DNA from: Octopus sinensis
Lineage: Eukaryota
Assembly (NCBI RefSeq): GCF_006345805.1
Contig: NW_021832230.1
Location: 1-64,000 of the forward strand
DNA length: 64,000 bases
Direction: 5' to 3'
Notes under the pieces: generated by a model
Told to the model about the DNA's origin: nothing
Seen by the model: only the letters and a program-made list of their open reading frames with translations
Database searches by the model: none
Made by a program: the position numbers and the translations under genes
Shown here: positions 22,649 through 64,000 of the stretch, one piece after another
How positions within the stretch are numbered: the first letter of the stretch is position 1
Layout: every line of letters begins with the position of its first letter

Positions 22649-23795
22649 ATCAATTTTTTACTTTTTATTCAAAATTTTAATTTTCTTGAATTTGATGAAT
22701 TTTGCATTCTCAATACAAGTTTTTCGAAAATTTTTAATTTTCATTCGAAATCAAATTCATATTTGTGCAATTTTTTTAATAATAATATTGGGAAAAATCA
22801 ATGTCACCGTCCAGATAGGTCGGGGCGCCAGATCGGTTATGTATAAAATTTTTAATAAAAACTACCTTTCGGAAGTTATTTTCTTTTTCTGTTCATTCTT
22901 TTGTTGATTTTAATATTATTTTTGCCAAAATATTGAAGTTACTGAGTTCATAAAAAACCAACATCCAGTGATTTCCAGATAATTACCGTATTGATTTTGC
23001 ATTTATTTAAAAACGCTTTAACCAAGGTTAGCCAAACAATTCTCAACAATAAAGTTTATTAGAAAAATCCATTTTTAATTTTAAAAATGTTGTAAATTTC
23101 TATTTTTATCATTAAAACTCTAAAATACAATCCGGCCTAAGGCCGGATGATTCAATGTGAATATTTTTCCCTATGCGGCCTTCGGCCGCGTCTAATTTGT
23201 AACAATGGCACAATTATTTCACAATTAAGTAAATATGACACGAGAAAAACCACAGAACGAACCCCATGAATATTTGCAGTTAAAGTTTTTTTACTCTGCT
23301 AATATGTATCCTTTGATCTTTTTCATCCTCTTCATTAATTATCGTTACGAGTTCTCGATCCCTATTTTTCACAATATATTTTTGTGCAGATATTTCGTCG
23401 TATAATGGGTATTTTCTATAACCCGGGTTTGCATCCCTATCATGCCGTATTAATACTATCCAGCAAATATTGTCGCGGGACACCGCTGCCAGCTGGACAT
23501 ATCAAGGGACGATCAAATCAAAACCAATATAGCCGTTCCGTGAGATCGCAACTTCATCGCCACTTTTCACTTCATCATACAGTTTACCCTCTATTGCTCG
23601 CCATTTCTATAACTCGCCACTTTTTTGGAAAAAATGCCATTTTTACTAAGGAAATTCCATTGCTCGCCAAATTCTCTTACTCGCCACGTTTTAGTATTAA
23701 AAAATTAAAATTTATTATTAAAAAAAATAATTTTTTCAAATATTTATACCGCGTGTTTTTTTTGTAACATGAGGAAGTGCTCAAGATTATCTTAT

Positions 23796-24156
23796 AGAAT
23801 AGAATAGAATAGTGTTTATTGAGCGAAAAGAAAAAGAAAAACAAGGAAGAAAAACATCGGCGGGGAGATAAAAACAAGGCACCGAAGTGTCTCTTTCCAT
23901 GCGTATCCCCAATACTAGTCATGTTTGACGACAATTCTCCAAGACCATCCGGATCGTGGGCACAGAGGATTCTTGTGAGTCTTTTAGCCTTCCGTCAAGT
24001 TGTACTCCGTAAGCCAATTTCATAGCGAAACGTCTTGTCTTTTCCAACTGTTCGATCAGGTAGTCACTCTCCTCCGTACCGTACCAGCCCTCGTAGCCAT
24101 ATGTGAGGACTGGCTGCACACACGTTTTGTATACGTAGATGTACGTTTCCGGATCC
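23796..24156 (-). mobile_element. Family B LINE, 5'-truncated copy inserted at codon ~9 of the pogo transposase
   Basis: Near-identical to 19277-19630. 12-bp TSD AGATTATCTTAT at 23784-23795 and 24157-24168. Removing it restores MRKCSRLSYDQKRE. Confidence 0.93.
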
Positions 24157-26694
24157 AGATTATCTTATGATCAAAAAAGAGAATTATAAATTATCTTATT
24201 GATAATTCTTCTCTAAGTCTAAGGCGTGTTTCAGAAATTTTTTCGTCGCGTTTCAAAAAATCAATTTCGAGAAGTGCAATTAACGATCTTAAATTGAGCA
24301 AACAGAAGATTCTTGGAATTAATCCAATTTATGGAAGAAGTTCTCGTTTTTCGAAACTTAGATATTCAGCAATTGATTCTGAAATCATTGCCTGGATAGA
24401 TTACATGGAATCTATTGGAGTTTGCCTCAATGATGAGATAATTTTGTCGAAAGCAACTGAAATTGCTGCGTTAAACGGTCTCTTCGAATTTAAAGCCAGT
24501 AAAGGATGGCTTGAAAAGTTCAAAAAAAGGCACAATGTAAAACTAAGATTTTTCATGGTGAATTGGGATATACTGCGGATGAGTTCAAAGACCAAATCGA
24601 AGACTTTAAAAAAATTATCTCTTCTAAAATAAATGAATATGGTTCAGAAAATGTTTATAATGCCGACGAAACCGGCGTATTTTACAAGACCATTCCATCA
24701 AAAAAGTGTCTGCAGGAAACGCCGACCAGGAAAAAAATTACTTAAAGATAGGTTAACATTTTTAGCCAATTTTCAGATTTTCATTAATGCTTTGCGCAAA
24801 TATGACTGGATCCGATAAAAGAACCCCTTTGATGATCGGGCAGTTTAAGAAACCAAGGTGTTTTAAAAACTTGAACGTTGATGAATATTTACAATACCGG
24901 AATTCTTCAAAGGCTTGGATGAACATGGAAATATTTAACGAATGGTTGTATAATTGGAACAAGACTCTCAAACAAAACAAAAAAAGATACTTTTGGTTGT
25001 AGACCATTGTCCTTCGCATAGAATAACAATCGAATTAAGTATGATAGAAGTTTATATTTACCAAAAAACACGACTACTGTGCTTCAACCGATGGATCAAG
25101 GAATCATTAGATCATTCAAATCTCATTTCAACAAATTTAAATTTAAACATATAATTGAACAAATAAACTACGGTGACGCAACTATTGAATGCTATAAAAA
25201 TTAACCCTGAAAGATGCAGTCTTATTTTCTTATCTAGCCTGGAAAGATGTGTCAGTGGATACAATATCAAAATGTTTTCAGCACGCCAAATGGGAAAACA
25301 GAATTGAAGAACCTATTATGGGAGACCATAAAATAAAAAATTTCGAACAAATTATAGAAAAATTAATGATCACAGATCCCATAAAAGAGGAGGAGTTTAT
25401 AGACTTTACGTACTCTGAAAATGACGAACTTCATGAATTTGTTCAAAACAATAACTATGAAAATAACGATGAAAATGCAATTTTAGACAGTTCAATTACT
25501 GAAGATTGTGAAAGAAACAACTGTATTACACATCAAGATGCGATAAAATGTATTTCGGACCTCAAAAAATATTTTTCACATGACGATAATTTTGATGTGA
25601 ATATGCTAGAAAGTTTATTAAAAATGCAAAAAAATATAGAGAAAAGATCATACAAAAAAACTAATTAAAAGAAATGTATTATACAAGTTATTCTAATGAC
25701 GGCCAGGATCTTTGGTATTTTTTGCGAGCTTATTGAAATGCACTGGTAGGGTAGATATCATTATGCGCAAACATGACTCTAAGTTTGCATCCGTTATCCG
25801 AGATCTATATTGACTTTTTAAATATTTCATTTTGGAAAATGTAGACTCACATAAATATGTGCATCCGAATAAAACGAGAATAATTTCTTGCCATTTCACG
25901 TAAATTTGGATAATCTGTCGCTGATTAAATCATTGCAAAATTAAATCATTTTTTAATTTCAATAATTCAATTTGAAATTCCAACGGCGCATTCTCAATCG
26001 AAACAGTATGTGGTGCTGCAGTTAATTGAAGTTTGAGTTCAATTTTTTTTAATTCGTTAAATCGCTCTTCAAATTGTTTCAAAATATAATCGAATATAGT
26101 ATTAAATGTATTTGGTGTAAGATCGTCATAATTAATTATTTTGTCATCAATGAGATTTTTAACTTTTTGAAAATAAAATAATTCATTTTTTTCTATGTGA
26201 ATCTTCAGTATGCGGCATGTATCCATAAAATCGTTAATTTTTTTTATACATTCGACAAATTGTTTGGTCCTTACCTTGCAAAGATATATTCAAATTATTG
26301 ATATATGGATTTGACAACTAGGTGGTCTAAATGTCTTTGAAAATGTTGTTTAGCATTGTCCCGTTTTATAGTTTTCACAATCTCATGGCACAATAAGCAT
26401 TGCATGCTATTGTTGTCTGTTTCGACTACGAAGTATTCACTTTCCCAGTTGATATTAAATTTTCTTTTTTCGTCATTCAAAGCACGTCGTCTTTTAACAG
26501 GCAATGTCATAAATAAATTAAGCCGTTTATGATAATTACTTTTAATAAAGGTTAACCGTTATATAAAAATAGAATTTTATTTAATATGAATATTTTTAAT
26601 TATTATTTAGGGTTTTTCTTGATTAATTAACACTATGAGCATTATATTTAAGATTAGTTGCTTGATGACCTAATTGAATTTATGGCTATAGCGT

Positions 26695-26761
26695 GCGTCA
26701 TGTGGTTCACCGTTTCTGGTGGCGTCAGATACAATCTTAAATTGTATCCAAAAAGAACCAT
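26695..26761 (+). ncRNA. Candidate HDV-like self-cleaving ribozyme (possibly degenerate)
   Basis: Nested pairings in HDV order: P1 GCGTC/GGCGT, P2 GTGGTTC/GAACCAT, P3 ACC/GGT, P4 GATACAAT/ATTGTATC, with a C after P4. L3 (6 nt), J1/4 (CA rather than GG) and J4/2 (C + 5 A) are non-canonical. Confidence 0.4.
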
Positions 26762-26849
26762 TAGTCAAAATCCATCCAGCGGACTTCCCCCTGGACAGCA
26801 CTCCCCCCAAGTTAGTGCACTTTCCTGGTGGCGGCTCATCATCTCCGGA

Positions 26850-26873
26850 GATGTTGAGCAAAATCCTGGACCT
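26850..26873 (+). other. 2A-like StopGo peptide motif DVEQNPGP upstream of APE
   Basis: SWWRLIISG-DVEQNPG-P matches D(V/I)ExNPGP with a hydrophobic upstream segment. It is in frame with, and 8 codons before, APE LNING. Confidence 0.85.
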
Positions 26874-27498
26874 AGAAAGAACCTCAATATACTGAGCCTG
26901 AATATCAACGGAGTTAGAGGCAAGGCCAAAGAACTAAAACTTTATCTGGAGAGGAAAAATATTGACGTCTGTCTTTTGCAAGAAACGAAGCTTTCGAAAA
27001 CTGGCAAAACCCCCAATTTCTCTGGCTTCAATGTGCTAAGAATGGATCGCCCATCGAGGCACGGCGGAGGCTTATTGACCCTTGTCAGAAAGGAAATCAT
27101 CTACAAAAATCACTCCACATTCAGGAAACTGGATAAAGACTGTAATACAGAATTTCTCGCCATCTCCATTCAAACTTCTCTTGGACAAATTATTATTGGA
27201 AACATCTATATCCCGGCTCCTGTGCCAAGAATTTACAGTGGATTTGTCTGAACTTGACAAGGTGGAAAACTTGCTGGTCTCTGGCGATTTTAATGCCAAA
27301 ACACCCTCATGGTATTGGAAGCAACCTTCAGATAAGAGGGGGAACCTAATAATTTCTCACCTGGAAAATCTGTGTGTTGTAAACGACCCAAGAATGAACA
27401 CTCGAACCCCTTACAACGAGAAAAATTCACTCACTTCACCCGATATTACGATTTGCTCACCACGACTGGCACCTCTTGTTCATTGGCCTCTTGTTCAT

Positions 27499-28169
27499 CG
27501 GCATCAGGGGGTCTTTTCTAAAGTCAGAACAGTCCTTCCCGGGGTCCATCAGGGCTCTGTGCTGAGTCCCACGTTTTTTAATGTCTTTATTGCATCTGCG
27601 CCCATGCCAGTCAATGCTCGTACTGAAATGGTAATTTATGCAGACGACATCATCCTCTGGGATCACTCGATGAAACCTGAGTGTGCGTGTCGTAGGCTAC
27701 AGGTTGCTGTGGATGGACTTGTAAACTGGTGTGGGAGTAGGGGTCTAAAGATGCGTGCGGATAAGTGCAGTGTTCTCAAAGTCTGTAAAAGGACGAGGGG
27801 TTACACTAATTACGCTCCTAGGTTATTGCTGAACGGGTCAGCAATTGCTGCAGTTGATCGGATGACTTATTTGGGCGTGCTCTTAAGCCGTCCGGTAAGT
27901 TTGATGATCACATTGCACGTACGAAAAATGCGTGCAATGCAGCGATTAGGCGCGTTGCGTGCTTTTCGGCTGCGGAGAGGTGCTTGGCTACGTGTGTTTA
28001 ACGCCATGGTGTTACCCGTGTTGACCTATGGTGTACATGCCTGGCACTTCTGTGAGGACCGAGAGAAGTACGTTGACGCGCTCAAGAAAGTCAGAAGACG
28101 AGCCATCCGGCTAGCCCATGGCTTAGGATGGCGAGTGGAGCTCACGGACACCCAGGAATTGTCCCTCAT
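27499..28169 (+). mobile_element. RT C-terminal fragment of a different LINE (distantly family B-like) replacing part of the host LINE
   Basis: GVHQGSVLSP, YADD and VLPVLTYG...KKVRRRAIRLAHG appear ahead of the host's own RT, giving two YADD motifs in ORF 27082-28941. Confidence 0.8.
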
Positions 28170-28935
28170 GAATACACGAAAGAATACACGCTCCTGCGGA
28201 CCAGACGGAATCCCAGCGATCATGCTCAAAAAATTGGGCGATGCAGGTATCTCTGCACTTACGAGTATTTACAACTACTCGTGCAATTTCAATTTCATTC
28301 CAACATTATGGAAACTGTCGTGCATTCACCCAATCCTGAAGCCTGGAAAACCGAAGGAGCAACCTGGATCATACAGGCCACTGTCCCTTTTATGCGTCCA
28401 GGCACGAATTCTAGAGAGAATGGTGATGACTTTGATTCGTCCCCTCCTCCCAGAAGTCAGTTTCCAACATGGATTCAAAGAGGGGCGATCAACTGTCACA
28501 CACCTAAATGCTTTAATGAAGTTTATATCAGACGGTCTAAACAAGAAACCTAAACAGGAAAAATCCATTGTCTGCTCGATCGACATAAAGAAGGCTTTCG
28601 ATTCGGTGCCAAGGAAAATACTCACACAAAAGATCTATTCCTCAAATATTGATACGAATCTAAAACTATGGCTTGGGAATTTCCTGAGCGGCCGTCGGGG
28701 AAGAGCTTGCTGTGGAAACAGAGCTTCCATATCGAGACTATTACCAAATGGGGTCCCTCAGGGTTCTCCACTATCTCCACTCTTATTCAATCTCATGATG
28801 AACGACATACCACAGCCAGAAGGGGACAACGATCTGTTATTACTATATGCAGATGATATTATCGTCGCATCAAGGGATGTGAGCATAATAAAAGCAACGG
28901 ATAGAATACAGGATAACCTCAACAATCTGAGTTCA

Positions 28936-31012
28936 TCTTAATAATAAAATGGTATGGTGTGTGTCTGTCTTTCTGTCTGTCTGTCTGTGTGTGCACACCA
29001 ACTTCAAATTGGCAATACGATGTCCTCGACTTACATGATGAGGTCCTTAAAACCTTCCCGCCAAAAAAAAATTGAAAAGAACTTTTCTGCATTTTGGTTA
29101 AAATGAACAACTACGATGTCCTCGACTTACATGATGAAGTCCTTAAAACCTTCCCCAAAAAAAAATTAAAAAAAAATTTTCTGCATTTTGGTTAAAATGA
29201 ACAACTACGATGTCCTCGACTTACATGATGAAGTCTTTAAAACCTTCCCCCCTAAAAAAAATTAAAAAAAAATTTTCTGCATTTTGGTTAAAATGAACAA
29301 CTACGATGTCCTCGACTTACATGATGAAGTCCTTAAAACCTTCCCCCCCAAAAAAAATTAAAAAAAAATTTTCTGTATTTTGGTTAAAATGAACAACTAC
29401 GATGTCCTCGACTTACATGATGAAGTCCTTAAAACCTTCCCGCCAAAAAATCAAAAAATTATTTTCTGCATTTGATTAAAATGAACAACGTTAATGTCCT
29501 CGACATTCATGATGAGGTCCATTAAAACCTTCGAGGCAAAAATCTCACGTATTAAGAATATCCTTGATGAAAACGACAGCAAGAATATTAACAATGATGA
29601 ACTCCCAATTATTCGCGATAAAGAAATTCAATTCATCCTATGATTTTCTCTTAAAAATTAAATGCATATATCATTATCGACCATGAATCAAAATTAAAGC
29701 TATTATCATATTTGACTTTGACAGAATGTGCAATTACAGATTGCACGACCTTGAATAGAGTGTGCAATTAACAGATTTTGAAAAACCACTTTGATAGTTG
29801 AAACCACATTAGCACAATCATTAACACAATTTACCACCAATTGACGCACGACCTTGAATAGAGTGTGCAATTAACAGATTTTGAAAAACACTTTGATAGT
29901 TGAAACCACATTAGCACAATCATTAACAGAATTTACCACCAATTGACAGCGCAATCAGAAGAATTTGCGTAAAAATATTAACTATTTAGTTAAGTTTTTC
30001 GTAAAGATAGAATTTATTTTCGGATGCCTCTTTTCCTAAACTTTTTTATTATTCAAAAATAATTTTTTCAATAGATAACCGAAGGAGGGAAGACGAAGCT
30101 GAAGAAAAAACGGTCAGCTTAAGGTAATTAATTAAATCTTTTTTGTGCGTCGCTTTTTTGGCTGCTGCTACTCTGCCTGCCCCATCTCCGCCAGTGGTTT
30201 GTGTAATCAAGGTCACTAAGCTAAATCTCCGGACTATAAAGGCTCTTAAGCATTATCTTAATTGGCTGTTAAAAAAATTAGACAGGTTGTTGCCGTGGCG
30301 GCAGAGATTTTTTTTGTTTATACTATTTCACAAATTTTTAAAGTTTTTTTTTGTTTTTTTTTATTTTTTTGTTTTTAAATTATTTATTTTTATTTGTTTT
30401 TTTTATTTTTTTGTTATTTTCTAAAAATTCAACCGGATTGAATTTTTAAACTCCTTAGATCCCTTGGAATGCCGAATCATTTTTTAAAGTTAAAGATAGG
30501 CGTTCCAGTGGTTTTATTACGAAATCTTGCGCCACCTAAATTATGCAACGGAACGAGGTTAGTTATCAAAAATTTGATGGATAACGTAATAGAGGCGACG
30601 ATATTAACAGGTAAGTATAGAGGTGAGGATGTATATATTCCACGAATTCCGATAATTTCTGATGAATTACCATTTAGATTTAAAAGGCTGCAATTTCCTT
30701 TGAGGATGAGTTTTGCAATGACAATAAACAAGGCCCAGGGACAGTCATTAAAGGTAGTTGGGTTATTTTTAGAGAGTGAGTGCTTTTCACATTGAAAGCT
30801 GTATGTGGGATGCTCGAGGGTAGGCAGAAGAGAACATTTATTCATATATGCCAAGGAAGGACGGACGACAAACATCGTTTATCAACAGGCGATAGAATAG
30901 GGTTACATTAAACTAGGTAGTTTTATACATCTACATAAACTTATAGTTGTTTGATGAAACAGGCCCTCCGCAGGAGCTAGGTCGCGGTGAGCGAAGCGAG
31001 CTGCCGAGCTAG
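28936..31012 (+). mobile_element. Non-autonomous Helitron copy 3 inserted in the LINE RT ORF
   Basis: A|TC ... CTAG|T with no TSD. Same microsatellite, ~94-nt repeats and helicase fragment as copy 2. Confidence 0.95.
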
Positions 31013-32849
31013 TGGCTATATAAAAACGAACTGGAGGCAAGTCCGGAAAAATCTATTTTGACTCTGTTTACGAAAAACAGAAGGCTTGGGAAAGTCTCAA
31101 TTGAAGCAAAGTTAGACGGGGAAATTATACCGCAGAGCAAAACCCAGAAGATTCTTGGAGTTACATTCGACACCTTTTTAACCTTTTCAACCCACGTCGA
31201 AAATGTAGTTATGGCGGGTGCAAGAAAGATTAACTTCCTGAATGCCTTCCTGAAGAACGCAGGAGAATGCAAAGGCCTATATGGCCTAAACAACATATAT
31301 AATCAATACTTGGAACCTACGATCGGCTATGCGTGCGCAATCTGGGGAACAAACTTAAGTGGAAACAATATATCAAAAATCGACAAAATTCGGGCGAAAG
31401 CGGCAAACCTGCTGAATACTTTCTCTTAAAAAAGATTATCCCGAAAGCCTGGAACAACGGAGAGGTTCGTCCTGAAAATCCCCGTCCGTACCGAAAATGC
31501 GTCGGGACAACGGCGGAACATCGGGAGAGGCTGCGAGAACTGCTGGGGGAGGCTGGGATCACCTGAATTCTTCTTTCTTTTGGCTATGACGTTGGTTTTC
31601 TGGTTCAATAATAATAATGACCTAATTGTGCCCACGGCCGCACATTCATCGACTCGCGGCCGCATGCGGCCGTCACGGCCGCACTTGCGCACCCCTGGTT
31701 TAGATAGTTAAAAATTATAGAAATTTTTTGTTGATAGAAAATAGGATATTGATTATTTCTCTTACTCGCCAAATTCTCTTAGTCGCCAATTTTGGCTTGG
31801 TCCCAAAAATGGCGAGCAATAGAGGGAAGACTGTATTTCCATTTTCAAAGCCACATCAGTACGTATGGCACCATAAATTGTGAGTGTCAATAAACTGTAC
31901 AACCTATCACGTCCAAAGTGATTAAGATTGTGTTGAACCTAATTTAAATAGACAATTATACTACTTCAATGAATTTTAACTTAAGTTCAGCGTCTTCGAT
32001 ACAAAAGAAACGCAACTTTGAGCCATTTTTAGAAATGTAGGTGTTGTTCTCCTTGAAACTAAATTTTTTGGCATATCTCCGTATTCGTGCCCTTTCTTCC
32101 GAACTCAAGGAATCATCAAGGTGGCCTGATTCCAAATACTCCCTAATTTTTTCGAGGGTGTCTCGAGTTAATTAACTAAAACCATTGATTAATGCTAATC
32201 TTTTCAACTTTTTAGAACTTTTTTATTAATAAGATTTTATTTTTTTATTATCAATATTTTTTTGCAATGAAATGTTTTGTAGGAAAAATATTTGTTTTGT
32301 ATTTAGTTAATTGACCTGACCGATCTGGCGCTCCGGCCGGTCTGGACGGTGACAATCAATATTAATAATAAAATCATTAATGAATATTATTCAAATAAAT
32401 ATTCTTTAAATTTATGTTAAAAATTGAAAACAATATTTTATATATTTATCAATTAAAAAAGCAATATATTTAATTAATCTCTTTGTATGTGGTAACTTGA
32501 CTTTAATATTTTTTAATTTTAAATAGCTGCGTTATTTACTACTTCCAAATATTACCTTCGGCTTTATATTGAGTAATAGAACTCATTTTCTTTACTAAGG
32601 ATAAAATTTAGCGCCTTATAAAATATAATATCGGAATTTTACTAATACCATTTCTTTTATTTTTATTTAGCGATTATAAAACAACTTTGTCGAATTAAAT
32701 TAATATGACTTTATGTGCTTATGAACACGAGATATTTTGTTAGAATATAATTTATATTCTAATGATTTCCGAGAAATTAGCTAATTATGCCAAATGTTCG
32801 ATTTATTCAAAAAATTAATATCTATGAAACTTTTTTTACTCTTTTGTAG

Positions 32850-34794
32850 ACAAGAGTTCAATAAAAACTATGGATGTTTTGTCCGGCAATGATACTTCAG
32901 AAACTGTTATGATGCGAAAGAAGTTGCGAACGACGTCAAATTTTGCTCGAAATTCATTCATTTACAAAAATGATAAAAAATGTCATTCTGAGCCTGAAAT
33001 TGATCCTAATAAGTTTTAAATTATTTTTATTTTTAGTACAAATATTTTCTTTTCACCGTTCCAGAGCATTGTAGAAAAACTTAATAAAACTATGAATAAA
33101 ATTTCAGATGTGAAAATTATTTTGAAAAAGTTTACTAATTAGATTGATTTAATTTTATTAGTAAAAATACGAATATACTCAATGATTCTTCGCTAAATAA
33201 AATCGATAATGATATTTTTATTTTATTAGATACTGCCCAGTCTGACGTAGAAAAAAGTATCAAAAATCTTATTTCATTACCAATTGACAAATCGATTAGT
33301 GAAATGACTTCGGAAAAAGTTTTAAATCACTGAATACTATTTAATGATAATTTCATTAGTTTCAAAAATTATTGGGCAATGAATTATCATATATAAAATA
33401 CATGAAACCGAACGGACTACAAGTATCGCAATACATATCAGAAAATTTCACTGGTAATGATTTCAATTTAAAGGGCGTTTAAAAAGATCTTAGCGATCTG
33501 ACCTCTTTGGAAACATTTGTTAAATCGACTAAGTTATCAAAAACAAAAACTTTCAAATCTGAAATAAAATATAATAATGATCTAAAAATGTATCATAAAC
33601 AAAAGAAATTGACTGTTAAATGCATTTTTTAATTTACTAGGTTTTACCGAATATTGACAAATGGGGGGTAGATATTTTTAATATTGAGGAACAATTTCCA
33701 AATAGAGTTCTCACCGTTGTTGCGTACACAGTTTTTATGGTATCGTGTAAATCAATTTTTAATACAAAGAATTATAATTTGGATGTAAAATTAAACATTC
33801 CGTCTGAAAAAATAATAAATTTTATGGTTCAGCTAGAAGAAAAGTACCATTCGGATGTTTTGTATCATAACAGTACTCATGCGGCAGATGTTTTACAAAG
33901 TGTTAATGTATTTCTTAATTTTCCGTGTTTTGAGGTACAAATAATGATAATACACTCAGGGAGTTTTCTCTGATTGTGAGATTTTAGCTGCTCTTCTGGC
34001 TGCCGCAATTCATGATGTGGATCATCCCGGATTTTCGAATCAGTTTCTTATACGAACTGGTTTACAATTCTCTTTGGAAATATTGTAGAATCAAGCTTAG
34101 CTATAACCTATAATGATATATCTGTACTTGAGAATCATCATGTCAGTACAGCCTTCAAACTTCTGAAGGTTCCTGGGTGTGATATTCTCTCTTCTCTAAG
34201 CAAAACGGAGCAAATTTATGTCAGAAAAACTGTGATTGAAATGGTTTTGGGGACTGACATGTCTAAGCACTATGATCACATTGCACAAATGATATCCATG
34301 TCTAAATCAGATGAAAATAATCAAAAGGCTTTTTCTACAAGTTCAGAACGATTAAATGTATTGATTTATAATAATTATCAATATCACTAGTTATTAAAAT
34401 CTATGTTACACTGTGCGGACATTAGTACAGCGGCACGTCCGAAAAATATTTACGAAAGATGGGTTTCAAGATTGACAAGCGAGTTTTTTATGCAAGGCGA
34501 CTTGGAGAAGAAACTAGGGTTAGATCCAAGTCCTCTATGTGACCGGGTAAACTCTGATATTCAGCAATCACAGGTTTTTGATAATTATTTATTTGGTAGG
34601 CTACATTTATTGAATATGTGGTTCTACCGTTGTGGGAATCATGGGCACAAATTGTGTTTCCTAATGCAGAAATTATGTTAGAAACGATACATGAAAATAA
34701 AGAACAATTAGGAAATATTCAGATAATAGATAGGGACACAGATTACTCTATAATTATTGATAAGTATGAACTCAAATATACTGATAATGAATAA
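32850..34794 (+). CDS. PDE4: cAMP-specific 3',5'-cyclic nucleotide phosphodiesterase, PDE4/dunce-like; multi-exon, 5' end uncertain
   Basis: UCR2-like [10 protein letters not shown] and [18 protein letters not shown]. Catalytic motifs [40 protein letters not shown] and [13 protein letters not shown]. Introns 33935-33959, 34060-34088, 34358-34390 and 34574-34599. One apparent 1-nt deletion near 33398. Confidence 0.92.
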
Positions 34795-34829: not shown

Positions 34830-35648
34830 ACAAAATCTATGTAGAATGTCTAATCGTTTTTACATGGGAGGAGTGTTTAGGAAATGCTACTAACTTGCTT
34901 CGCTTCAAAACACTTGCCTCAACAGATAGTATGAGGCCATGCAAATTAAGAAGAAATTTTGTAAAAGCATTTATGAAAAAATTGGTATTATGGAAATCAA
35001 ATATACAAACAAATATCAATGACATTTTCCCACTTTTAAATACCTTCTGCGCCATAGTAATCATTGAAGTAAACAAAGACATATTTGCTGAACATTTGGA
35101 TTGTTTGTTGAAGCATTTTGCTCATTATTTTTAAGATCTTGATTGTAAAACGTTCGAATGGATACAGAATCCATTTATTGATGAAGAACATAATGGATTT
35201 GCATTGAAAACTTTTGAAGAAGAAAAATTGTTAGAATTGTCATGTGATACATTATTGAAACAAAAATTTGAGAGAGAACCGGTAATTTATTTTTGGTTGA
35301 ATGTAAGTACGGAATATGAAATTTTGTCGAATAAAGCAATGAAAATTTTGTTGCCATTTGCTACCTCATATTTATGCGAAACTGGATTTTCTCCACTAGC
35401 TGCAATGAAATCTAAATATCGAACTCGTTTAGTAATGACTAATGAGCTAAGAGTAGCACTCTCTTCAATGACATCAAGATTTCCAAAACTTTGCGCCAAG
35501 ATGGAAAAAATTATCTCACTAACTTTTTGTTTTAAAAAATTGTTTTTGATAAATTAATACTTGTATTATATTATGGAATATAAAGGGAGGCGCAAGATTG
35601 TACATTTTTTCTAAGGGAGGCGTGTAAAGAAAAGCTTAGAAACCTCTG
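34830..35648 (+). mobile_element. hAT Buster/ZBED8-like transposon, 3' fragment
   Basis: FEWIQNPF and AMKILLPFATSYLCETGFS. 3' TIR ...GCTTAGAAACCTCTG followed by CTCTAGCT (NNNTANNN). Confidence 0.88.
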
Positions 35649-36178: not shown

Positions 36179-39100
36179 ATGAATATGGAAGTGGTAAATT
36201 TCTAATTTTTATACTTAAGTTACAAACAATCGAACAACAATGCGAAATATTATTTTGTTCACCAAATATGAATCTTCGAAACGAAGCACAAATCATTTTA
36301 AACAAATTAATGCAAAGAATTTCTCCATTTGAATTGTGCCTCAAAAGCCTTCAGCTCTCTAACGTATTTAATTGCAAAATATATTTTGATAGAGTCAATT
36401 TCTTCACTTTATTTCAATTTCAACTCTTAATCGCAGTTTTGAAAACAGGACGTTTACTTTTTCTCCTGAAGAAAAAGAAAGCATCTGTAATAATTTTTAC
36501 TTTTTATAAAAGAATGTATGATATTATTAATTTAGTGCCCGTCCTCTTAAACTTTATGGCAAATAACATCAATGGGGAAATTTCAACTAGTAAATTTTCT
36601 GCACAGGTTTTTTAATTTTAATCTGATTTTAGTTATATGTTCGGATTATGATGTCTATTGATTCACCTTCCACCAATATGTATAATGTTATAAAGGAGGC
36701 TAAAAAATTTATTGTGGTTTACATCCTATTATATAAAAATATTTAAGACTGAGACTTTGATTCCCTATCAAAATTTTTTGGGGTTCACAATTTTATTCTA
36801 TCTAGTTGAAGAGTCTAATCGTACTAACAATATTTCATTAGGGGTACTTCTATTTATTCACTCATAAACATAGGAATTTCTTAGAGGATGGGATTTTCTC
36901 ACTACTATGAGATCACGTGACAAATTTTCCGAGAAATATTTTTTGGAAATAATAATGATAATAATAAATTATGTGGATAAATTTATAATGCATCACACAA
37001 ATGAAATGATAAATTTTATGAATGTTTTTACTATCCTAAAATTAACAGACTTTAAAATCTGCCCTTGAATTAATGACTGCTTGCTTGCTTTATGATTTTG
37101 GTACCACTAATTTTGAATCGTCTCTAAATGACATGGCCGCAGTCAATCTTCCAAAGATATGGCATTCTTGTTTTATTTTTAATTTTATTCCTAGACGTTT
37201 ATTCTTTTACAACACCAAATACTCTATTTCATCTTTTGGATGTCGTGCCTCCACATCTTCATATCAATGTTTGTTTATTTGAAAGAAGAAAAAACGTTTA
37301 GGTTTATGATTGTTTGGGACCAATGGTATCTATGGGAAGGAACACGTTGACTCCTCTTGAACGATCTCAATTTATAAATTCTGTGGAGTCTGCTTTTATT
37401 AATATCCTTGAAAAATCTGAAGTTTAAATTCTTATCTGATAATAAATATTATTTAGAATTTGAATACCAATGCTGCCTGTCACTCATTTGCCAAAATGAT
37501 TTTTCGTTTTCATGTTGCAATCTGTCGATCGGAATTGGAAGCAACTCCTGCTTATCAGACATATATCAAACTTCTGAGTTCATTTACTGAATTTATAATT
37601 AAGGTTTTTTATAATATTTAAAAAATTTTGTAGGATATGTCACAAATAGGCGATAATACGTTATCTTATGTTCTTAATGTTTGGTCTCGTCTTATAGACG
37701 ATAAACGAGATTTTAATAGCTTCTGTAATCGTCAATTAGTAGAAATTGTGCAACTTTACATATCATGTCGTCTTAATACTGTAGAAATTACAAGGTTATT
37801 ATTAAGAAAATGATATTTAGTTACGAGGAAACTAGAAATTACTTAATTGAATGTCACGAAAATATTGCAACTCAGCTAGATATTGTTTGTCCATGTGCTT
37901 TTATAATTAGATCGGACTGCTTTTTAGGTTCAATTATAGTAATAATTTCCACGCCCTTAAGAATGAGTTTGATCTAACTCAGCGAACTTATCGATCCGAA
38001 ATAACAGCTAATTCCACTATCCAACCGAGTACTGATGGTTTTGATTCTGTTATTTCATACCTAATAGCAAAATTGACCTGGCTTGTTTTTATAATAGCCC
38101 ATATTATAAATGGCTCCAACACAATTTCTGCTACTAGGGGGGAAGCTGATAATTTTGATGCAATCTTATGTGCAGAGTCAGTTGTCTATGATTATTTTAG
38201 AGTTTTGTCTTTTATGATGAACACGGCCAATCAATTTCATGTCTACTTTTCTCCGAATCTTGAGCGAGCGTTTATTCGTTTTCTTGACTCATTTCAAAAG
38301 ACCTTTTATGGTCAATCCAATGAGACTATAAATATAGTTAATTATTTCTAATTAAATGTAGATATATTCATTATTATCTAGTGGGGAGTCTAAAATGAAT
38401 GCTGATTCTATTATTCTTGTTTTAGTCATGAATCGAATGTATTATATTGGTTTATTTTTATAGATTAACTCATCTCAAATGTCTTATTGATTTTGATATT
38501 ATTGAATCTTCAGTTAGTCTTTTAACAGGCCTAACTTCTGTTGAATATATTAACGCACAGTTACTTGAGATTTCCTCTGCTAAATATTTGTTGACAAGTC
38601 ACATTGTTTGTTATATTATTCTATTTCATTATAGCCAACACGGCTTTGTTTTCTAGCACAAACGGATCCCAAATTTTATCCAATTCGGACTAAATTTTTC
38701 TCGGCCATAACTATATTGGCAGGCACTCCGAATATGACTAATAACAGATTTAAAGACTTCATTAAGATTGTCGAAAGTATAGTAGTGATATATTTAACTT
38801 ATAAGACCGTTTAAACATGTTCCAGCAAAAATTGGAAGCAGGAGATGCAGAAAATTGCAGGATGGAAGTCATTTTCCTTGCTAGAGATTTGCGCGGGATA
38901 TGTTATGCGCTATCTCATAATTATTCGTATTCTATTTTTATTTCATGGATACAATCGAAATATTTATCTATGTTGATACAATGCTTTAAAATATATTATG
39001 ATGATGCTGTTGTTTGTTCTTCGTTATTCCGCTTCTTTATTGAAGCAACTACTAATCGGTTATTTGTGATTATTTTATATTATATTCAGATATCAGCGTC

Positions 39101-43639: not shown

Positions 43640-43930
43640 TTACGTTCCTTGAGATTTTTCTTGCCTTTTAGTCTTAATTAATTCTTCGAAACGTGGTTTT
43701 TTGTTTGCTAGTGCAATTCTGAGATAGTTTTCAAGGCTAAGAGAGTTTCTGTTCTTCTTTTTTATATGTAGTAGAGATGAAAATCCAGATTCACATAGCC
43801 AAGTTGTTCAAATGGTATCAGAACTTACAGTGATTTCTTTGCAAGTTTAGGGAACCCTGCTTGCAAACCGCACCAAAAAACTTCCAAAGAATTTGAGTCG
43901 TACAACATTTCCCAATGTCGCCAGTGGTTT
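43640..43930 (-). mobile_element. hAT (Buster-like) transposase C-terminal remnant
   Basis: FWCGLQAGFPKLAKKSL...WLCESGFSSLLHIKKKNRNSL. Confidence 0.8.
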
Positions 43931-43959
43931 ATTTTAAATAATTATGAATTGGGAATGGC

Positions 43960-44150
43960 AGAGTGTTTGTCCCCCGGGCTGTTGAGACGTCAAGAATACA
44001 GGGGCCTTCTACTCGGACCCTACTCTAGTGCATTGGCTCATTAATCGAAAGGGTTACCGGCGACCCGTGTGAGCACCGGTATTTAATCGAACGAATATCT
44101 ATAGCCATAGTCAGAGGCAATACTTTGGCTATCTGCCAATGACGATTTTT
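43960..44150 (+). mobile_element. CRE-like 3' terminal remnant
   Basis: VETSRIQGP...RVTGDPCEHRYLIERISIAIVRGN. Confidence 0.75.
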
Positions 44151-44238
44151 CTCTTGTCCTTTCTTTATTAATAAAATAAATTAATTTATTATGTGACTGT
44201 TTGTGCTAAGTTTTTATGCAAGCTTGGGGGTTAATAAA

Positions 44239-44924
44239 TGTGACCGGTTGAATACGAGCCCAGGTTGAATACGAGCCGTTAAACGAGCCGTCAAAGTGGC
44301 GTTATACGAGCCGTTAAATGGCGTGAATGCCGTTAAATCATATTAGGGTTAGGGTCAGGGTTAGGGTCAGTGTTAGGGTCAGTGTTAGGGTCAGTGTAGG
44401 GTCAGTGTTAGGGTCAGGTTAGGGTTAGGGTCAGGGTTAGGGTTAGGGTCAGGGTTAGGGTTAGGTCAGGGTTAGGGTCAGGGTTAGGGTTAGGGTCAGG
44501 TTAGCGTCAGGTTAGCGTCAGGGTTAGCGTCAGGGTTAGCGTCAGGTTAGCGCAGATTAGGTTAGGGTCTGTTTTCTTTAGTGTCTTTTATGATGAATAT
44601 GTTTATAAATAACGTTGAAATCATTTATAGTTAGAGTTAAAGTTAAGATTGAGTTAAAGTTGTTACAAACTTGTAATTGCTAATGTTGCAATTTATATAT
44701 CAAAAATAAAAATAATTCACATTATAATTTGCTAATGTTGTAATAATTTTACTATTTTAAAGCAAACATGGTTCAAATATAAAACATCATTTTTCAAAAA
44801 TTTAAAGTTCAATCATTAGTTCGGAACGTTTGCATTTATTGTAATTGGCCTTTTGAATCGGTATATTAATTATCGATCTTTTTAACGGCTCGTATTCAAC
44901 CGTATCTCATTATGAACGGTCACA
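44239..44924. mobile_element. 686-bp MITE (TGTGACCG...CGGTCACA) with 5-bp TSD, carrying a telomere-like array
   Basis: TSD ATAAA at 44234-44238 and 44925-44929. Inverted GTTGAATACGAGCC motifs at both ends. Several subterminal ACGAGCC copies on the left. Confidence 0.87.
44343..44567 (+). repeat. Interstitial telomere-like array (TTAGGG with TCAGGG/TCAGTG/TTAGCG variants)
   Basis: About 225 nt of alternating TTAGGG and variant hexamers. Confidence 0.95.
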
Positions 44925-44989
44925 ATAAATAAAAAAAAATTCACCTCTAGCAGACAAATACCTGTTTCTGAGTCAAAGTAAATTCAGAT

Positions 44990-45500
44990 GATAAAGTTCC
45001 ACTGTATATGTCGTATGGATGCATGATGGAGATTTACCACGACCCAAAAATTTCAGAAGCCCGTTTACATATTATAAATTTATCTTCCTGACTGTTCGAT
45101 ACTGTAAGCAGAAGAAAGCTGCTAAGTTTATTTTTGCCCATGCTAGACGGACACTGTCTGAGGATGATACCTGTCCTACTTGCGAACATCAAAATAGACA
45201 TTTTTCAAAATAACATACTTGCGTAAGAACAGCATTGATTTGGTCGATCAACCGGTCACTGTTTCTCGCTTTCTGAGGAAGAACTGTCTCTAACCAAACT
45301 TTGCCTAGTGGCGGTTTGCTTGGACGTCTGCGAGGCTTTTGACAGTGTCTGGCACTTTGGGTTTTTAGAGTATGTGACGGAATTGGTTGCTGGGCGGAAA
45401 ACTGTCAAATGGCTAGAGGGGTTCTTTTGTGAGAAAAAATCGTTCATTCATTACGGGAATTTCTCATTGAAAAGAAGGGAGGGGTTTCATAGGGATTAGT
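44990..45500 (+). mobile_element. Short degraded RT fragments from two LINE families
   Basis: FDTVSRRKLLSL (RTE-like) and VCLDVCEAFDSVWH (family B-like). Confidence 0.65.
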
Positions 45501-45510: not shown

Positions 45511-47330
45511 TAGCGATTCCCAACCGGGGTGCCGCGAGGTCTGGTTTTAGGCGCCGCGATATCTTTAATATTTAAAATTAAAAGTTATTTATGGTTGTAT
45601 AGAATAGAATAGAATAGTATTTATTGACTGAAAATAAAAACAAGGAAGAAATCATTAACGGGGAGATAAAAACAAGGCACCGAAGTGTCTCTTTCCATGC
45701 GTATCCCCAATTGTAGTCATAGTTGACGGCACTTCTCCAAGACTATCCGGATCGTGGGCACAGAGGATTCTTGTGTGTCTTTTAACCTTCCGTCAAGTTG
45801 TACTCCGTAAGCCAATTTCATAGCGAAACGTCTTGTCTTTTCCAACTGTTCGATCAGGTAGTCACTCTCCTCCGTACCGTACCAGCCCTCGTAGCCATAT
45901 GTGAGGACTGGCTGCACACACGTTTTGTATACGTAGATGTACGTTTCCGGATCCAGATGGAACCTGGTTAAGCTTTTGAGGATCCTCACACTCCTCTTTC
46001 TCTGATTTGCTATATGATCTGCGTACGAGCAACGACAGTTGATGGTTGCTCCCAGGTAATAAAGATTTTTGTTTTTCGAGAGATCCATCACATAACTACT
46101 CATCGCATATGCACACGACTCCGCATAGCGACTCCCTCTCCGCAACCATGAGATGGTGCTCTTCTCCGGTGCTTGGGTCAAACCCTTCTCTATAGTCCAC
46201 ATCTTTAGCGTCCACATCTTCAATTTATGATTGAAGTCGTCTCCAAGACTGCGATATCCTTTTCGAGGTATCCATGACCAGGATATCGTCAGCATAGATG
46301 ACGAGCTTGCCAGTACGTGTCGACGGCAGAGGAATGTCCGCCAAGAAGAGGTTGAACAGAAGTGGACTCAAGATAGATCCCTGCGGGACTCCCCTTCTAA
46401 GTTCCACACACCCCAATAAGCGGTTTCCACAGCGGACAAATGATTGTCTTCCTGACAAGAAGCTCTCCAGCCATCGATATGTCTTTATCCCGGCTCCGGT
46501 TTCATGGACTCTGGAGAGTAGGCCCAGGTGCCACACGCTATCGAAGGCTTTGGCCAGGTCTAGACACACCACAGTTAGCCATGCTTTATTTCTATCAGCA
46601 CGGGATAATTGGTGCTCTAACTCCCTGAGGCAGTCCCCTGTGGATCTTCCTTCACGAAATCCCCATTGTTCGGGTAAAAGCAAATTTTGTGATTCTATAT
46701 GACCAGAGAGTCTGTTAAAGACAATCTTTTCCATTGTCTTAGAGAAAGCACAAATGAGGCTAATTGGGCGGTAGTTCTGTGCCAGCAGTGTCGATTTACC
46801 AGATTTTTTTATTCAGGTGGACGAATCAACAGATTTTTGTTCAGAATCTCATGTTATTGTATTTGTTCGATTTGTAAATGATAATACGATTGAGGAACAC
46901 TTCTTATGCTGCAAACAAATAAACTGTACGACCAAAGGAGAAGATATATTCAATCTTGTATCTACATATTTCAAGCAGAATAGTATATCATGGAAAAATT
47001 GTGTTGGGATTTGCACAGATGGTGCTCCCTCAATGGTTGGATCTAGAAAGGATTTGTCGCTTTTGCAAAACAGGAAAATGATGAAATTATCACAACACAT
47101 TGCTTCATTCATAGAGAAGTGCTGGTTTTTAAAACTCTTGGAAAAGAACTAAGAAATGTTCTTACTGACGTTATTAAAATGATCAATTTGAATCTTGTAC
47201 GGAACAAAAGCAATATTTGTTGGATTTCGATGTGTTGTGACAAAAAACCGACGAAACACAGAAACTGTACATTCAGCCCTATAACATAAACTGAGGAAGA
47301 CATTGCTCACCAACAGAGGACATGATGTGA
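45511..47330 (+). mobile_element. hAT Buster/ZBED5-like remnant split by a family B LINE
   Basis: 5' TIR-like AGCGATTCCCAACCGGGGTGCCGCG at 45512. Transposase QVDESTD...TDGAPSMVG...HCFIHRE from ~46812. Confidence 0.78.
45599..46807 (-). mobile_element. Family B LINE, 5'-truncated copy
   Basis: Highly similar to 19277-20475, with an (ATTCT)n tail. No TSD visible. Confidence 0.93.
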
Positions 47331-60234: not shown

Positions 60235-61101
60235 CACTGAAGAGGCTTAAATCGACATAGCTCAGCTATACAAATCTCTTAAATCCCGTAAAAGTACGTT
60301 TGTACAATTCCTTCGCTTTCATCCTGCCCATTTTACGAGAAGATTGTAACTTTCTTTCTTGTTGTTGGGGATGTGCAATTAATAATAATTTTAACGTAAA
60401 ATGATTTTTTGATTTTAATAAAACAAATTAAAATTTAATAAGTAGACATCTCCCCACGTTTCTCAAAAATTTCTAAACTTCTTTTTTCATTGACATAAGC
60501 TGATTTTCAGTTATTTTTTGGATGTTTCCAAATCTTTCAATTTTTAGTGGATTTTGCAATAATTTATTCTTTATCGTCGTCCAAACATGCTCTATTGGAT
60601 TCAGGTCAGGTGATTGAGAAGCCAAATCAAAAATGGTATATTTCCGTTTTTATGGATATTGAGGCAGTACAGGTGGAAATACTCATTGAAGAAGGAAATG
60701 CGTTCTTTCTGGGAGGAGAAGACAGACAGTGCATGCAATGTGTAGATTCACGGAGAAAACTGCTGGGTGGCTGTGAAGTTTTGGGTGTCATGGATTTGGA
60801 TTTATGAAAAGACAAAAAGAATGAAAAAAGATTAAAGGATAAGATCGAATAAAATAAATAAAAAAGGGCTAAGAATGAGAGTAAGAGATAATTAAGAGAT
60901 GGAAAGATGCAAAAATAAAAATAGACCAAAAGAATGACAAGAATAGAGCAAAGGAGCAACAGAATGACAATGACAGAGACACGACGACAACAACCCAGAT
61001 AAAAATTTATTACTTTCTTGTTGACACAAAAGTGTTGTAGGTAACATTATTTTCAATGCTATTGAAAATTTGTTTTAGACTATTTTACTTATGTTTTAAT
61101 A

Positions 61102-62121
61102 GAGAATAGAATAGAATAGTGTTTATTGAGTGAAAAGAAAAAGAAAAACAAGGAAGAAATCATCAGCGGGGAGATAAAAACAAGGCACCGAAGTGTCTCT
61201 TTCCATGCGTATCCCCAATACTAGTCATGTTTGACGACAATTCTCCAAGACCATCCGGATCGTGGGCACAGAGGATTCTTGTGAGTCTTTTAACCTTCCG
61301 TCAAGTTGTACTCCGTAAGCCAATTTCATAGCGAAACGTCTTGTCTTTTCCAACTGTTCGATCAGGTAGTCACTCTCCTCCGTACCGTACCAGCCCTCGT
61401 AGCCATATGTGAGGACTGGCTGCACACACGTTTTGTATACGTAGAGTACGTTTCCGGATCCAGATGGAACCTGGTTAAGCTTTTGAGGATCCTCACACTC
61501 CTCTTTCTCTGATTTGCTATATAATCTGCGTACGAGCCACGACAGTGGATGGTTGCTCCCAGGTAATAAAGATTTTTGCTTTTTGAGAGATCCATCACAT
61601 AACTACTCATCGCATATGCACACGACTCCGCATAGCGACTCCCTCTCCGCAACCATGAAATGGTCCTCTTCTCCGGTGCTAAGGTCAAACCCTTCTCTAT
61701 AGTCCACATCTTTAGCGTTGCAATGTATGATTTCAGTCGTCTCCAAGACTGCGATATCCTTTTCGAGGTATCCATGACCAGGATATCGTCAGCATAGATA
61801 ACGAGCTTGCCAGTACGTGTCGACGGCAGAGGAATGTCCGCCAAGAAGAGGTTGAACAGAAGTGGACTCAAGATAGATCCCTGCGGGACTCCCCTTCTAA
61901 GTTCCACACACCCCGATAGGCGGTTTCCACAGCGGACAAATGATTGTCTTCCTGACAAGAAGCTCTCCAGCCATCGATAGGTCTTTATCCCGGCTCCGAT
62001 GTCATGGATTCTGGAGAGTAGGCCCAGGTGCCACACGCTATCGAAGGCTTTGGCCAGATCTAGACACACCACAGTTAGCCATGCTTCATTTCTGTCAGCA
62101 CGGGATAATTGGTGCTCTAAC
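61102..62121 (-). mobile_element. Family B LINE, 5'-truncated copy
   Basis: Near-identical to 19277-20290. Possible 7-bp TSD TTTAATA at 61095-61101 and 62122-62128. Confidence 0.93.
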
Positions 62122-62204
62122 TTTAATAAAATTTCTAAAAAATTTTCTAAAATTTAAAAATTAACTTCATTAATATTATATCATTTATGATTGTTCTGTT
62201 GTGA

Positions 62205-64000
62205 ATGAACATGGAAACAATAACGCTTATTGGTCTGGTCAAATATAGTCCTAATGATTTTTCCGATTCCAAATTCAAGAAAGGACAGTTAATTGTACAT
62301 CAATTTAATCAGAATGACTGGTTTATCAAAATAGTATCAAATACTGACCTCACTGAATGCAATACACAAACTATTAAGGTAGCAATCTTTTTTACTACAG
62401 CCTAATTTTCAGTTAACGAATGAGCTTAAGTCATTCTTTTTTGATATATCGACCTCATCAATATCTTTATATTTTTTCGACGGAGGACACCTAAAGTTTA
62501 TGTCAATGAAATGTGATGACTCTGCAAATGAATCTCTGCAACATTTTGAATCACTGCTTCGTTCGATTGTTGAGGAATATCAAAGTTTGTTTTTCTTATA
62601 TTTTTAACAGAAATTGAAAATTCTTCGAGTGAAGATAGTCCGGTTAGTTACCCTGCTCTCACTGCTCCTACATTTACGAGTATTCCCGAAAATGAGAAAA
62701 ATGAACAAGAAAATCAAAATCATAGTAGTAAAGAATATGGATCTTTAAATACTTATGGTACTTTAAGAGGGTACTTTTGGCATATTTTACATGAAGTTTT
62801 TTTAATCATGGTATTAATTGTTATGCAAATTCTATTTTACAACTTCTTCGTCGATGCAAACATTTTTTGTTATTACTTGAGGAAATATTCAATTTTCCAA
62901 TAGATAAAGGAGAAGAAAAATTGCCTGTTGCATGGTTACGAGTTTTCATTAGTTCTAGGAAACTGTTAAGAGTTTACGAAGAACACGATTCAGATTCGTA
63001 TAATAATTCAGAAGTTATGGCGTTAATAAAACTAATATCTAAAAATTATCCCGTATTTGACATTTACTCCGAAAATGTAGTCAATAATTTTTTAGTTATA
63101 GGATGCTCAAGAATTTTTGAGTTATTTGCTTGATGCCATTGATGAGGAGTTTGAATCTCTCGAAGATAAATCAGGGTTTGAAAATCCTGTGAAAAATAAT
63201 TTTGGGGTCATTATAGAAAAGAGAGTAATTTGTAAAGAGTATTTGCTTCTTTAATTTTTATAAAAGATGTAAGCATTTGGTGTTCAAGAACGAATACTTT
63301 TCAATGCTATCTCTTTACCCTCCTCCCTTAAAGTTTTTATATTATAAAAATTATTATTTTATCAGTAAAGGACTTTATTCTTTGGAACAATTATTACAAT
63401 GGAGCATGAACGATGAAGAAGTGGAATTCACCTGTAGCAAATGTTCTAATCAGTATGTTGATATCAGAATGTCAGTAATTAAATCCCCTCGGTCAGTTTT
63501 ATTTTTCTATTTTTCATAGCTATCTTCTACTTCATGTAAATAGAATTTCCTACGATTGTTCAGAATTTTTACTAGCTAAAAAAGAAGTTCCGATTATAAT
63601 TAATGATCGAATTAAAATTGATTGCAAACAATATGCCATTGCACAAAGTAGTTCAGAATCTCCAATTTCTTCGATTATTGCTGAAATGGATGTAGAATCT
63701 GCTTCAGAAAAATGTGATCAAAAATTAGAATTTAATTCTGTTGATTCAGCTCCCTATTCTGCCAAACGTTTTTGTAATCATCAAAATTCGCATTCAAATA
63801 TGGATGAACTCGAAGCAGTTTAGTTTATCTTATTTTACACCTATAGAAAATATGTAGTAATGAGTATTTATTGTGTTCTATTGTAAATCATTTTGGTATA
63901 TGTCCTGGTTCAGGTTCGTATTACATAGTTATCCCCCAGGACATTATACATGTGATGTCATGATTGAAAGGGACGTATGGTTATCTTGCAATGATTTGTT
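62205..64000 (+). CDS. USP37: Ubiquitin carboxyl-terminal hydrolase, USP26/29/37-like; incomplete at the window end
   Basis: After splicing 62771-62796 (26 nt), the Cys box reads GFFNHGINCYANSILQ. Also DAQEFLSYLLD, zinc-ribbon CSKC, His box GHYTCDV...W..CND, and an N-terminal segment resembling the USP37 PH-like domain. Subfamily assignment is from memory of motifs. Confidence 0.8.

Follow-up and report, generated by a model that had tools for sequence, protein, structure and literature searches.

The 686-bp element at positions 44239–44924 is probably (with a probability of about 0.6) one copy of a non-autonomous cut-and-paste DNA transposon of the MITE type, in which a telomere-like block is carried as passenger DNA. 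The element is located in a 64-kb window (the whole stretch of DNA that was analysed) and was delimited by direct reading of positions 43900–45300 with a check of the coordinates. Read directly, the left junction is ...GTTAATAAA followed by TGTGACCGGTTGAATACGAGCC, and the right junction is GGCTCGTATTCAACCGTATCTCATTATGAACGGTCACA followed by ATAAATAAAA. We observed a perfect target-site duplication, ATAAA, on both sides (44234–44238 on the left and 44925–44929 on the right), which abuts the ends of the terminal inverted repeats (TIRs) exactly. The first-pass annotation had described a TIR element with a perfect 5-bp duplication around a G-rich array, and this structure was seen directly. The element presents several features of a MITE: TIRs, a flanking target-site duplication, a small size and a non-coding sequence (the longest ORF is 42 aa). 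To the right of the array, the interior consists of an AT-rich core (44571–44880; 22% GC) which contains no reading frame and shows no significant similarity elsewhere in the 64-kb window. No RNA family was matched within the element, and a tract flanked by telomerase RNA was rejected because Rfam returned no match around the array.

The two TIRs are 45 nt long on the left (44239–44283, forward strand) and 44 nt long on the right (44881–44924, reverse strand). The left TIR reads TGTGACCG, with two tandem 15-nt copies of GGTTGAATACGAGCC (spaced by 17 nt from start to start) and then GTTAAA; the reverse complement of the right TIR reads TGTGACCGTTCATAATGAGATACGGTTGAATACGAGCCGTTAAA. The termini of the element are TGTGACC... 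and ...GGTCACA, and each TIR is composed of TGTGACC(G) followed by two subrepeats of ~17 nt. Both subrepeats of the left TIR correspond to GGTTGAATACGAGCC, and the outer subrepeat of the right TIR has diverged to GTTCATAATGAGATAC. The alignment of the TIRs with MAFFT (45 vs. 44 nt) is colinear; 36 of 45 positions are identical, and one gap of 1 nt was introduced. A 16-nt internal deletion had been proposed earlier for the left TIR, but the colinear alignment with its single 1-nt gap is sufficient. The deletion is moreover disfavored because it pairs the outer subrepeat on the left with the inner subrepeat on the right and needs a compensating duplication of 17 nt. The TIRs contain a 21-nt perfect inverted repeat, GGTTGAATACGAGCCGTTAAA, at positions 44263–83 and 44881–901 (0 matches in 100 dinucleotide-preserving shuffles of the window), and the ends of the element pair when it is folded as single-stranded DNA (z = −3.2 relative to shuffles).

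The left end further contains the subterminal repeats ACGAGCCGT[T/C]AAA and GCCGTTAAAT (44271–44342, forward strand), which were recovered by TRF with periods of 12 and 23 and as repeat families. The first of these, ACGAGCCGT[T/C]AAA, was found in three copies in the left end and in one copy in the right TIR, and the subterminal motif ACGAGCCGTTAAA does not occur outside the element in the 64-kb window. TIR transposons usually present multiple transposase-binding sites near their ends, and the reiterated subterminal motifs are presumed to represent such sites.

An 8-nt inverted repeat with a 5-bp duplication can be found in 64 chance cases in this AT-rich window, which could suggest that the structure is not mobile at all and simply represents an inverted repeat that happens to surround an interstitial telomere-like tract. 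However, the element was judged to be real based on its long TIR and reiterated subterminal motif and not on a short repeat with a duplication. The perfect 21-nt inverted repeat with no match in the shuffles, the colinearity of TIRs of ~45 nt, the reiteration of the subterminal motif at this locus only within the 64-kb window and the exact contact between the duplication and the TIR ends all argue against a chance origin, which we consider extremely unlikely.

We searched for additional copies of the element. A blastn search of the 64-kb window revealed no further copy, its only matches being AT-rich sequences of low complexity, and the TIR core was likewise confined to the element within the window. 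The exact 21-mer of the TIR core was absent from metagenome, prokaryote-genome and viral contigs. A gapped pattern of the termini yielded three matches, all in GC-rich bacterial contigs, and these were rejected as chance matches only. The flanks of the element are unique (~840 bp on the left and ~670 bp on the right), with no empty site in the window. Dispersed copies, another criterion for MITEs, were not found within the window and the metagenome, prokaryote-genome and viral collections. The dispersal of arrays that had been proposed previously requires more than one copy, and it gained no support from the window or from these collections. We infer the mobility of the element, its membership in a family and the presence of the array in a family consensus from this one known copy.

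The telomere-like array spans positions 44343–44570, with its G-rich strand on the forward strand. It is a 228-bp minisatellite with a basic period of 12 (TTAGGG-TCAGGG), which TRF preferred (89% matches; 17.7 copies) to a period of 6 (72% matches). The array is called telomere-like by its resemblance to TTAGGG, which may not be the telomere motif of the host. A total of ~38 units were counted on the forward strand, 14 of which are TTAGGG (16 when counting those within compound units). The variant units are TCAGGG (7), TCAGG (4), TTAGCG (4–5), TCAGTG (3–4) and TTAGG (2), and the longest pure run of TTAGGG comprises two units. These units are organized in blocks: TTAGGG/TCAGGG units form the first block and four copies of TCAGTG-TTAGGG form the second, followed by five repetitions of TCAGG(G) with one or two TTAGGG units and then by five copies of TCAGG(G)-TTAGCG. 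Dimers of TTAGGG were matched 14 times relative to 0.13 expected, all of them within the array, which is the sole such locus in the 64 kb. The array also contains three non-overlapping canonical G4 motifs out of the four found in the whole window. The first-pass annotation had reported a G-rich array of ~225 nt made of TTAGGG, TCAGGG and TTAGCG units and capable of forming G-quadruplexes. Both statements hold, the latter as a prediction, but the array presents a 12-bp period and is degenerate.

The array is degenerate and block-structured and looks like a drifting minisatellite; a telomerase product would be more uniform. Because the variants are found in contiguous blocks and are not scattered, they point to slippage or unequal exchange after point mutations. 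Judging from the sequence of its units, a telomeric origin of the array is most likely, and nothing indicates a telomere-related function. Neutral cargo had been offered earlier as a fallback interpretation, and it is the better-supported half of the proposal. The array most likely started from a short stretch of (TTAGGG)n that an ancestral copy acquired when a double-strand break or a gap was repaired. Slippage or unequal exchange would then have expanded the captured tract and turned it into a diversified minisatellite with a 12-bp period, a history suggested by the contiguous blocks of TCAGTG, TCAGGG and TTAGCG variants.

When the array joined the element is less clear, and two scenarios appear equally plausible, each of them rather unlikely on its own. 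In the first scenario, the array is a family-wide cargo: every copy would carry it and the family would seed interstitial telomere-like, G4-prone tracts, across the genome, either neutrally or with side effects such as fragility. The array is located between intact TIR arms and adjoins the subterminal repeats. It is also far more degenerate (72% at period 6) than a fresh telomerase product would be, and the target-site duplication is still perfect; the combination mildly favours an array that arrived with the element. However, a duplication of 5–7 bp is too short for dating the insertion, minisatellites can diversify fast in place and the window as well as the metagenome, prokaryote-genome and viral collections yielded no further copy. 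We consider it improbable, and more so than the shared cargo taken by itself, that the element belongs to a multicopy MITE family mobilized by an integrase-type (Ginger2/TDD-like) enzyme with the telomere-like minisatellite as a constant part.

In the second scenario, the array is specific to this copy: a plain MITE was later hit by telomeric break repair or by a nested insertion, and the array expanded locally. Repaired breaks are a known source of short interstitial telomeric sequences (PMC7215372, PMC8537989). Moreover, the array together with 47 nt lies between the two copies of a 7-nt direct repeat, AAATCAT (44335–41 and 44618–24; a rough estimate gives a chance probability of ~0.03), and this mildly favours a secondary nested insertion. 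However, the significance of this AT-rich 7-nt repeat is marginal, telomeric tracts from break repair are usually short, fairly pure and without duplications, and no similarity to RNA families or telomerase RNA was found with Rfam.

We further analyzed which transposase might have mobilized the element. Under the preferred reading of a non-autonomous transposon with passenger DNA, a DDE transposase supplied in trans would bind the subterminal repeats, cut at the TGT/ACA ends and integrate the element with a 5-bp stagger. The best guess is an integrase-type enzyme of the Ginger2/TDD kind, based on the TGTNR termini, the 5-bp duplication and an AT-rich target that lies between a purine and a pyrimidine. 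Integrase-type Ginger elements present TGTNR termini with a TG..CA pattern; Ginger1 elements generate 4-bp duplications (CCGG/CCGT) and possess TIRs of 40–270 bp, metazoan Ginger2 elements generate 4-bp duplications in an AT-rich target (R-TATA-Y) and possess TIRs of 50–180 bp, and TDD-4/5 elements generate 5-bp duplications (PMC2836005). The duplication of Ginger2 has also been summarized as 4 or 5 bp (PMC10045372). The same source attributes 6-bp duplications and mostly TA..TA ends to GingerRoot/IS3EU, and duplications of 4, ~15 or ~25 bp to IS481EU (PMC10045372).

We compared these properties with the 686-bp element and with a larger 9.5-kb element of the same window (22802–32354), which had been labeled "Ginger-like" and served as a comparison object. 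The TIRs of the large element are ~40 nt long (TGTCACCGTCCAGA...GCGCCAGATCGGT), with 36 of 44 compared positions identical. The sequence TGTCACCGTCCAGA is found exactly twice in the window, in inverted orientation, at positions 22802 and 32354, and the element is flanked by the duplication ATCAA (22797–801 and 32355–59). Its TIR was absent from the genome and viral contigs that were searched. The TIRs of both elements (44–45 nt for the small one and ~40 nt for the large one) reach or fall slightly short of the minimum lengths published for Ginger elements. Both targets are AT-rich and flanked by A...T, with a sample of only two. A base A precedes the left duplication and a base T follows the right duplication in both elements, which renders the length of the duplication ambiguous: the data are equally readable as 5-bp duplications or as 7-bp duplications (AATAAAT at 44233–44239 for the left copy of the small element and AATCAAT for the large element; pattern AATNAAT) with GTSACC termini. 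The first-pass annotation had considered that the two elements share the same duplication length; both can indeed be read as 5 bp, but equally as 7 bp.

The TGTNR...ACA structure is obtained under the 5-bp reading only (the small element reads TGTGA...TCACA and the large one TGTCA...TGACA), and the 5-bp duplications ATAAA and ATCAA fit only the TDD type under this same reading. Ginger1 was ruled out by the 5-bp duplications, since Ginger1 elements duplicate 4 bp (CCGG/CCGT). IS3EU/GingerRoot (6 bp; TA..TA) and IS481EU (4, 15 or 25 bp) were excluded on the basis of duplication length and termini. Transib elements generate a 5-bp duplication with CAC... ends, Tc1/mariner elements duplicate TA and piggyBac elements duplicate TTAA. 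These three groups were excluded by the same two properties, and alternative boundaries give no fitting termini. Overall, classifying the small element as Ginger2/TDD-like is a tentative best guess, held at somewhat less than even odds, and it does not amount to membership.

The A...T extension raises the possibility that both elements belong to a different superfamily, either a non-integrase TIR superfamily or an undescribed one, in which case the true duplication would be 7 bp with GTSACC termini and the resemblance to Ginger would be coincidental. With a 7-bp duplication and GTSACC termini, Ginger would not fit. This extension would occur by chance in both elements with P ~0.01 (from the base composition of the window), no integrase was found with Pfam in the minus-strand frames of the large element and the published metazoan Ginger elements present 4-bp duplications. 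However, A...T flanks are also expected from a preference for targets flanked by a purine and a pyrimidine, as for the RTATAY target of Ginger2, and TGT...ACA termini are a hallmark of integrase-type elements. We consider a different superfamily to be fairly unlikely.

The interior of the large element is composite. Read by eye, the plus-strand ORFs are LINE pieces (endonuclease and reverse transcriptase), a pogo-like piece and a fragment of a Helitron-type helicase. The interior also holds a hAT piece, with a Spin-doc zinc finger and a dimerisation region, and a tandem array of 96 bp. The LINE reverse transcriptase found in the window is only 30% identical to its best match. No rve/integrase domain was detected by Pfam in the three X-masked frames of the minus strand, which is the strand of the proposed transposase fragment, and the sole match in these frames was the Spin-doc zinc finger of the nested hAT. 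A 71-aa frame (…IREYLESGHL…RRYAKKFSFKENNTYISKNG…), which lies ~170 bp inward of the right end, is reminiscent of the region that precedes the zinc finger of Gypsy/Ginger1 integrases, and a database search returned no homologue of it. Since no integrase was detected, the "Ginger-like" label of the large element reflects its termini and duplication length alone. The integrase-type transposase that had been proposed for the system is consistent with the TGTGA termini and the 5-bp duplication, but the large element provided no integrase in support of it; such an enzyme may act in trans from another place in the genome.

The match that had been noted earlier between the right terminus of the small element and the TIR of the large element was reproduced (11 of 14 positions; P ~2e-3 given the shared TGT). 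In addition, the 9-mer TGTSACCGT was found three times in the 64 kb, always at element ends, relative to 0.32 expected. No similarity was detected between the two TIRs past nucleotide 14, and the subterminal motifs differ. Because only the first 14 nt are alike and the subterminal motif is absent elsewhere, the small element does not appear to be a deletion derivative of the large one. From these sequences, the two elements would represent at most different families of one superfamily, and the link of the small element to Ginger, which consists of the similarity over these 14 nt (11/14) together with the length of the duplication, is weak. In comparison with Ginger2/TDD elements (PMC2836005), the small element, under the 5-bp reading, similarly presents a TGTNR...ACA structure, TIRs of tens of nucleotides and a short duplication (as in TDD-4/5, with 5 bp), and the purine and pyrimidine around its AT-rich target are compatible with theirs. 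In contrast, metazoan Ginger2 elements duplicate 4 bp and the duplication observed here is 5 or 7 bp, and an integrase-like transposase was not found in the window. To our knowledge, no Ginger element with a telomere-like cargo has been described.

The strongest form of the original proposal was a telomere-seed system, in which a Ginger-type transposase and the MITE would spread seeds for telomere healing, for the recruitment of telomere proteins or for programmed fragmentation. The termini of Oxytricha TBE elements bear telomere repeats. Telomere-repeat-linked transposons have been reported in hosts that eliminate DNA, such as the TBE elements of Oxytricha (PMC4724952) and the Helitrons of Paramecium (PMC13085455), and the G4 motifs and many TTAGGG units of the array are in line with this idea. 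Paramecium Helitrons insert into telomeric repeats, and Tel-1 of Tetrahymena was proposed to gain its repeats on a linear intermediate (PMC13085455). These ciliate elements (TBE, Tel-1 and the Helitrons) are similar to the element described here in that they are mobile and physically linked to telomere repeats. In contrast to this element, however, their repeats are found at or flanking the termini and their hosts eliminate DNA, of which there is no indication here. In TBE/Tel-1-type elements the repeats form or abut the termini; the array of the small element is internal, 104 nt from its left end and 354 nt from its right end, with no more than two pure units in a row. Moreover, only one copy is known, no integrase was detected in the large element by the minus-strand Pfam scans and the window holds ordinary genes with no signs of fragmentation sites. 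We consider a telomere-seed system to be very improbable.

The neighbourhood of the small element looks like ordinary gene-bearing chromatin. We observed phosphodiesterase exons (33641–34678; best homologues 39–46% identical), an exportin-7-like exon (37911–38348; one weak match among 1.8 billion representatives) and an exon of a UCH-type hydrolase (62795–63130). The phosphodiesterase and exportin-7-like exons are unusually divergent. RNA-family searches returned no match, be it to rRNA, tRNA or any other family. A module composed of (TGTC)n and a 95/96-bp array was observed at three sites in the window. Repeat-carrying mobile DNA seems to be habitual in this genome.

Several MITEs with tandem repeats are already known: Xstir in Xenopus, (GTCY)n-microsatellite elements in insects and the MITE-like BIV160/HindIII-satellite elements in bivalves (PMC6947457). 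Similarly to these, the element described here is a short non-coding TIR element whose interior tandem array hitch-hikes with it and evolves by slippage. In contrast to them, its repeat unit is telomere-like (TTAGGG/TCAGGG) and it is known from a single copy. The novelty here is a repeat-bearing MITE with a telomere-like cargo. The array is also comparable to interstitial telomeric sequences, which are likewise internal, degenerate TTAGGG-like tracts with variants of the TCAGGG type and for which the transposition of mobile elements was proposed as one source (PMC6410037, PMC7215372). It differs from them by its location inside TIRs and a target-site duplication, and it is longer and more block-structured than the typical short tracts left by break repair.

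Chromosome fragility and rearrangement have been linked to interstitial telomere-like tracts, whose dispersal is only partly understood. Mobile elements have been suggested to transpose them, but sequence-level examples are rare (PMC6410037). A TIR element proven to carry such a tract would constitute a concrete example of that route and would extend the little-studied DNA transposons with TGT...ACA (integrase-type) termini by non-autonomous members with a cargo. With one copy and no transposase, this represents a tidy annotation rather than a discovery. If the family were multicopy, its transposition would incidentally spread interstitial telomere-like tracts. With multiple copies and a constant array, the element would constitute a documented vehicle that scatters G4-prone tracts in an animal genome, by a route that has so far only been proposed.

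The non-coding, MITE-type element of 686 bp (44239-44924) and the 9.5-kb Ginger-like TIR element (22802-32354), which both present TGT...ACA ends, were found to share the target form A-NNNNN-T (n = 2). Their duplications can therefore also be read as 7 bp long: AATAAAT for the small element (44233-44239 and 44924-44930) and AATCAAT for the 9.5-kb element (22796-22802 and 32354-32360). This pattern represents either a true 7-bp duplication or a preference for targets flanked by a purine and a pyrimidine, like that of the integrase-type Ginger2 transposons.

Within the small element, the 7-nt direct repeat AAATCAT (44335-44341 and 44618-44624) encloses the telomere-like TTAGGG/TCAGGG array together with 47 nt of unique sequence. 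A nested insertion that delivered the array may have left this pair as its footprint, or the pair may have arisen by chance, with a probability that we roughly estimate, rather than compute, at about 0.03.

A recently active LINE family is represented in the window by at least four copies or fragments (19277-21171, 23793-24164, 45720-46812, and 61100-62153), with ~89-92% identity across their 3' parts; one of the fragments lies on the right side of the small element, at a distance of about 680 bp. A LINE endonuclease ORF (26658-27251, + strand) is preceded by the sequence GDVEQNPGP, a 2A-like self-cleaving peptide motif; such motifs have been reported in some non-LTR retrotransposons of aquatic invertebrates. 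Pieces of DNA transposons are also nested in the 9.5-kb element: a pogo/Tigger-like piece (24171-25665, + strand) and a hAT-like piece with a Spin-doc zinc finger and a dimerisation-type C-terminus (25696-26558, − strand). A further hAT dimerisation fragment was found at 35135-35554.

The 9.5-kb element additionally contains, near a Helitron-type helicase fragment (30442-30792), the third copy (about 28950-29950) of a composite module whose other two copies lie at 1920-3190 and 3702-4908. The module combines a 95/96-bp tandem array of 4-5 copies with a (TGTC)n microsatellite and additional 102-119-bp and 15-bp arrays. It looks like a dispersed mobile element carrying tandem repeats, for which the literature offers parallels in (GTCY)n-microsatellite MITEs and in satellites borne by Helitrons. 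Separately, a large 87-bp satellite occupies 1006-1898 and 5724-14658. Its main array comprises ~104 copies (80% matches), its smaller array presents a 260-bp higher-order period, and the satellite has a strong G-over-C skew of about +0.5.

Host exons, all on the + strand, encode a cyclic-nucleotide phosphodiesterase (33641-34678), an exportin-7-like protein (37911-38348), and a UCH-type ubiquitin hydrolase (62795-63130). The phosphodiesterase reaches a best identity of 39-46%, and the exportin-7-like exon yielded only one weak match among 1.8 billion representatives. Because all three are unusually divergent, their sequences point to a host lineage that is either fast-evolving or poorly sampled.
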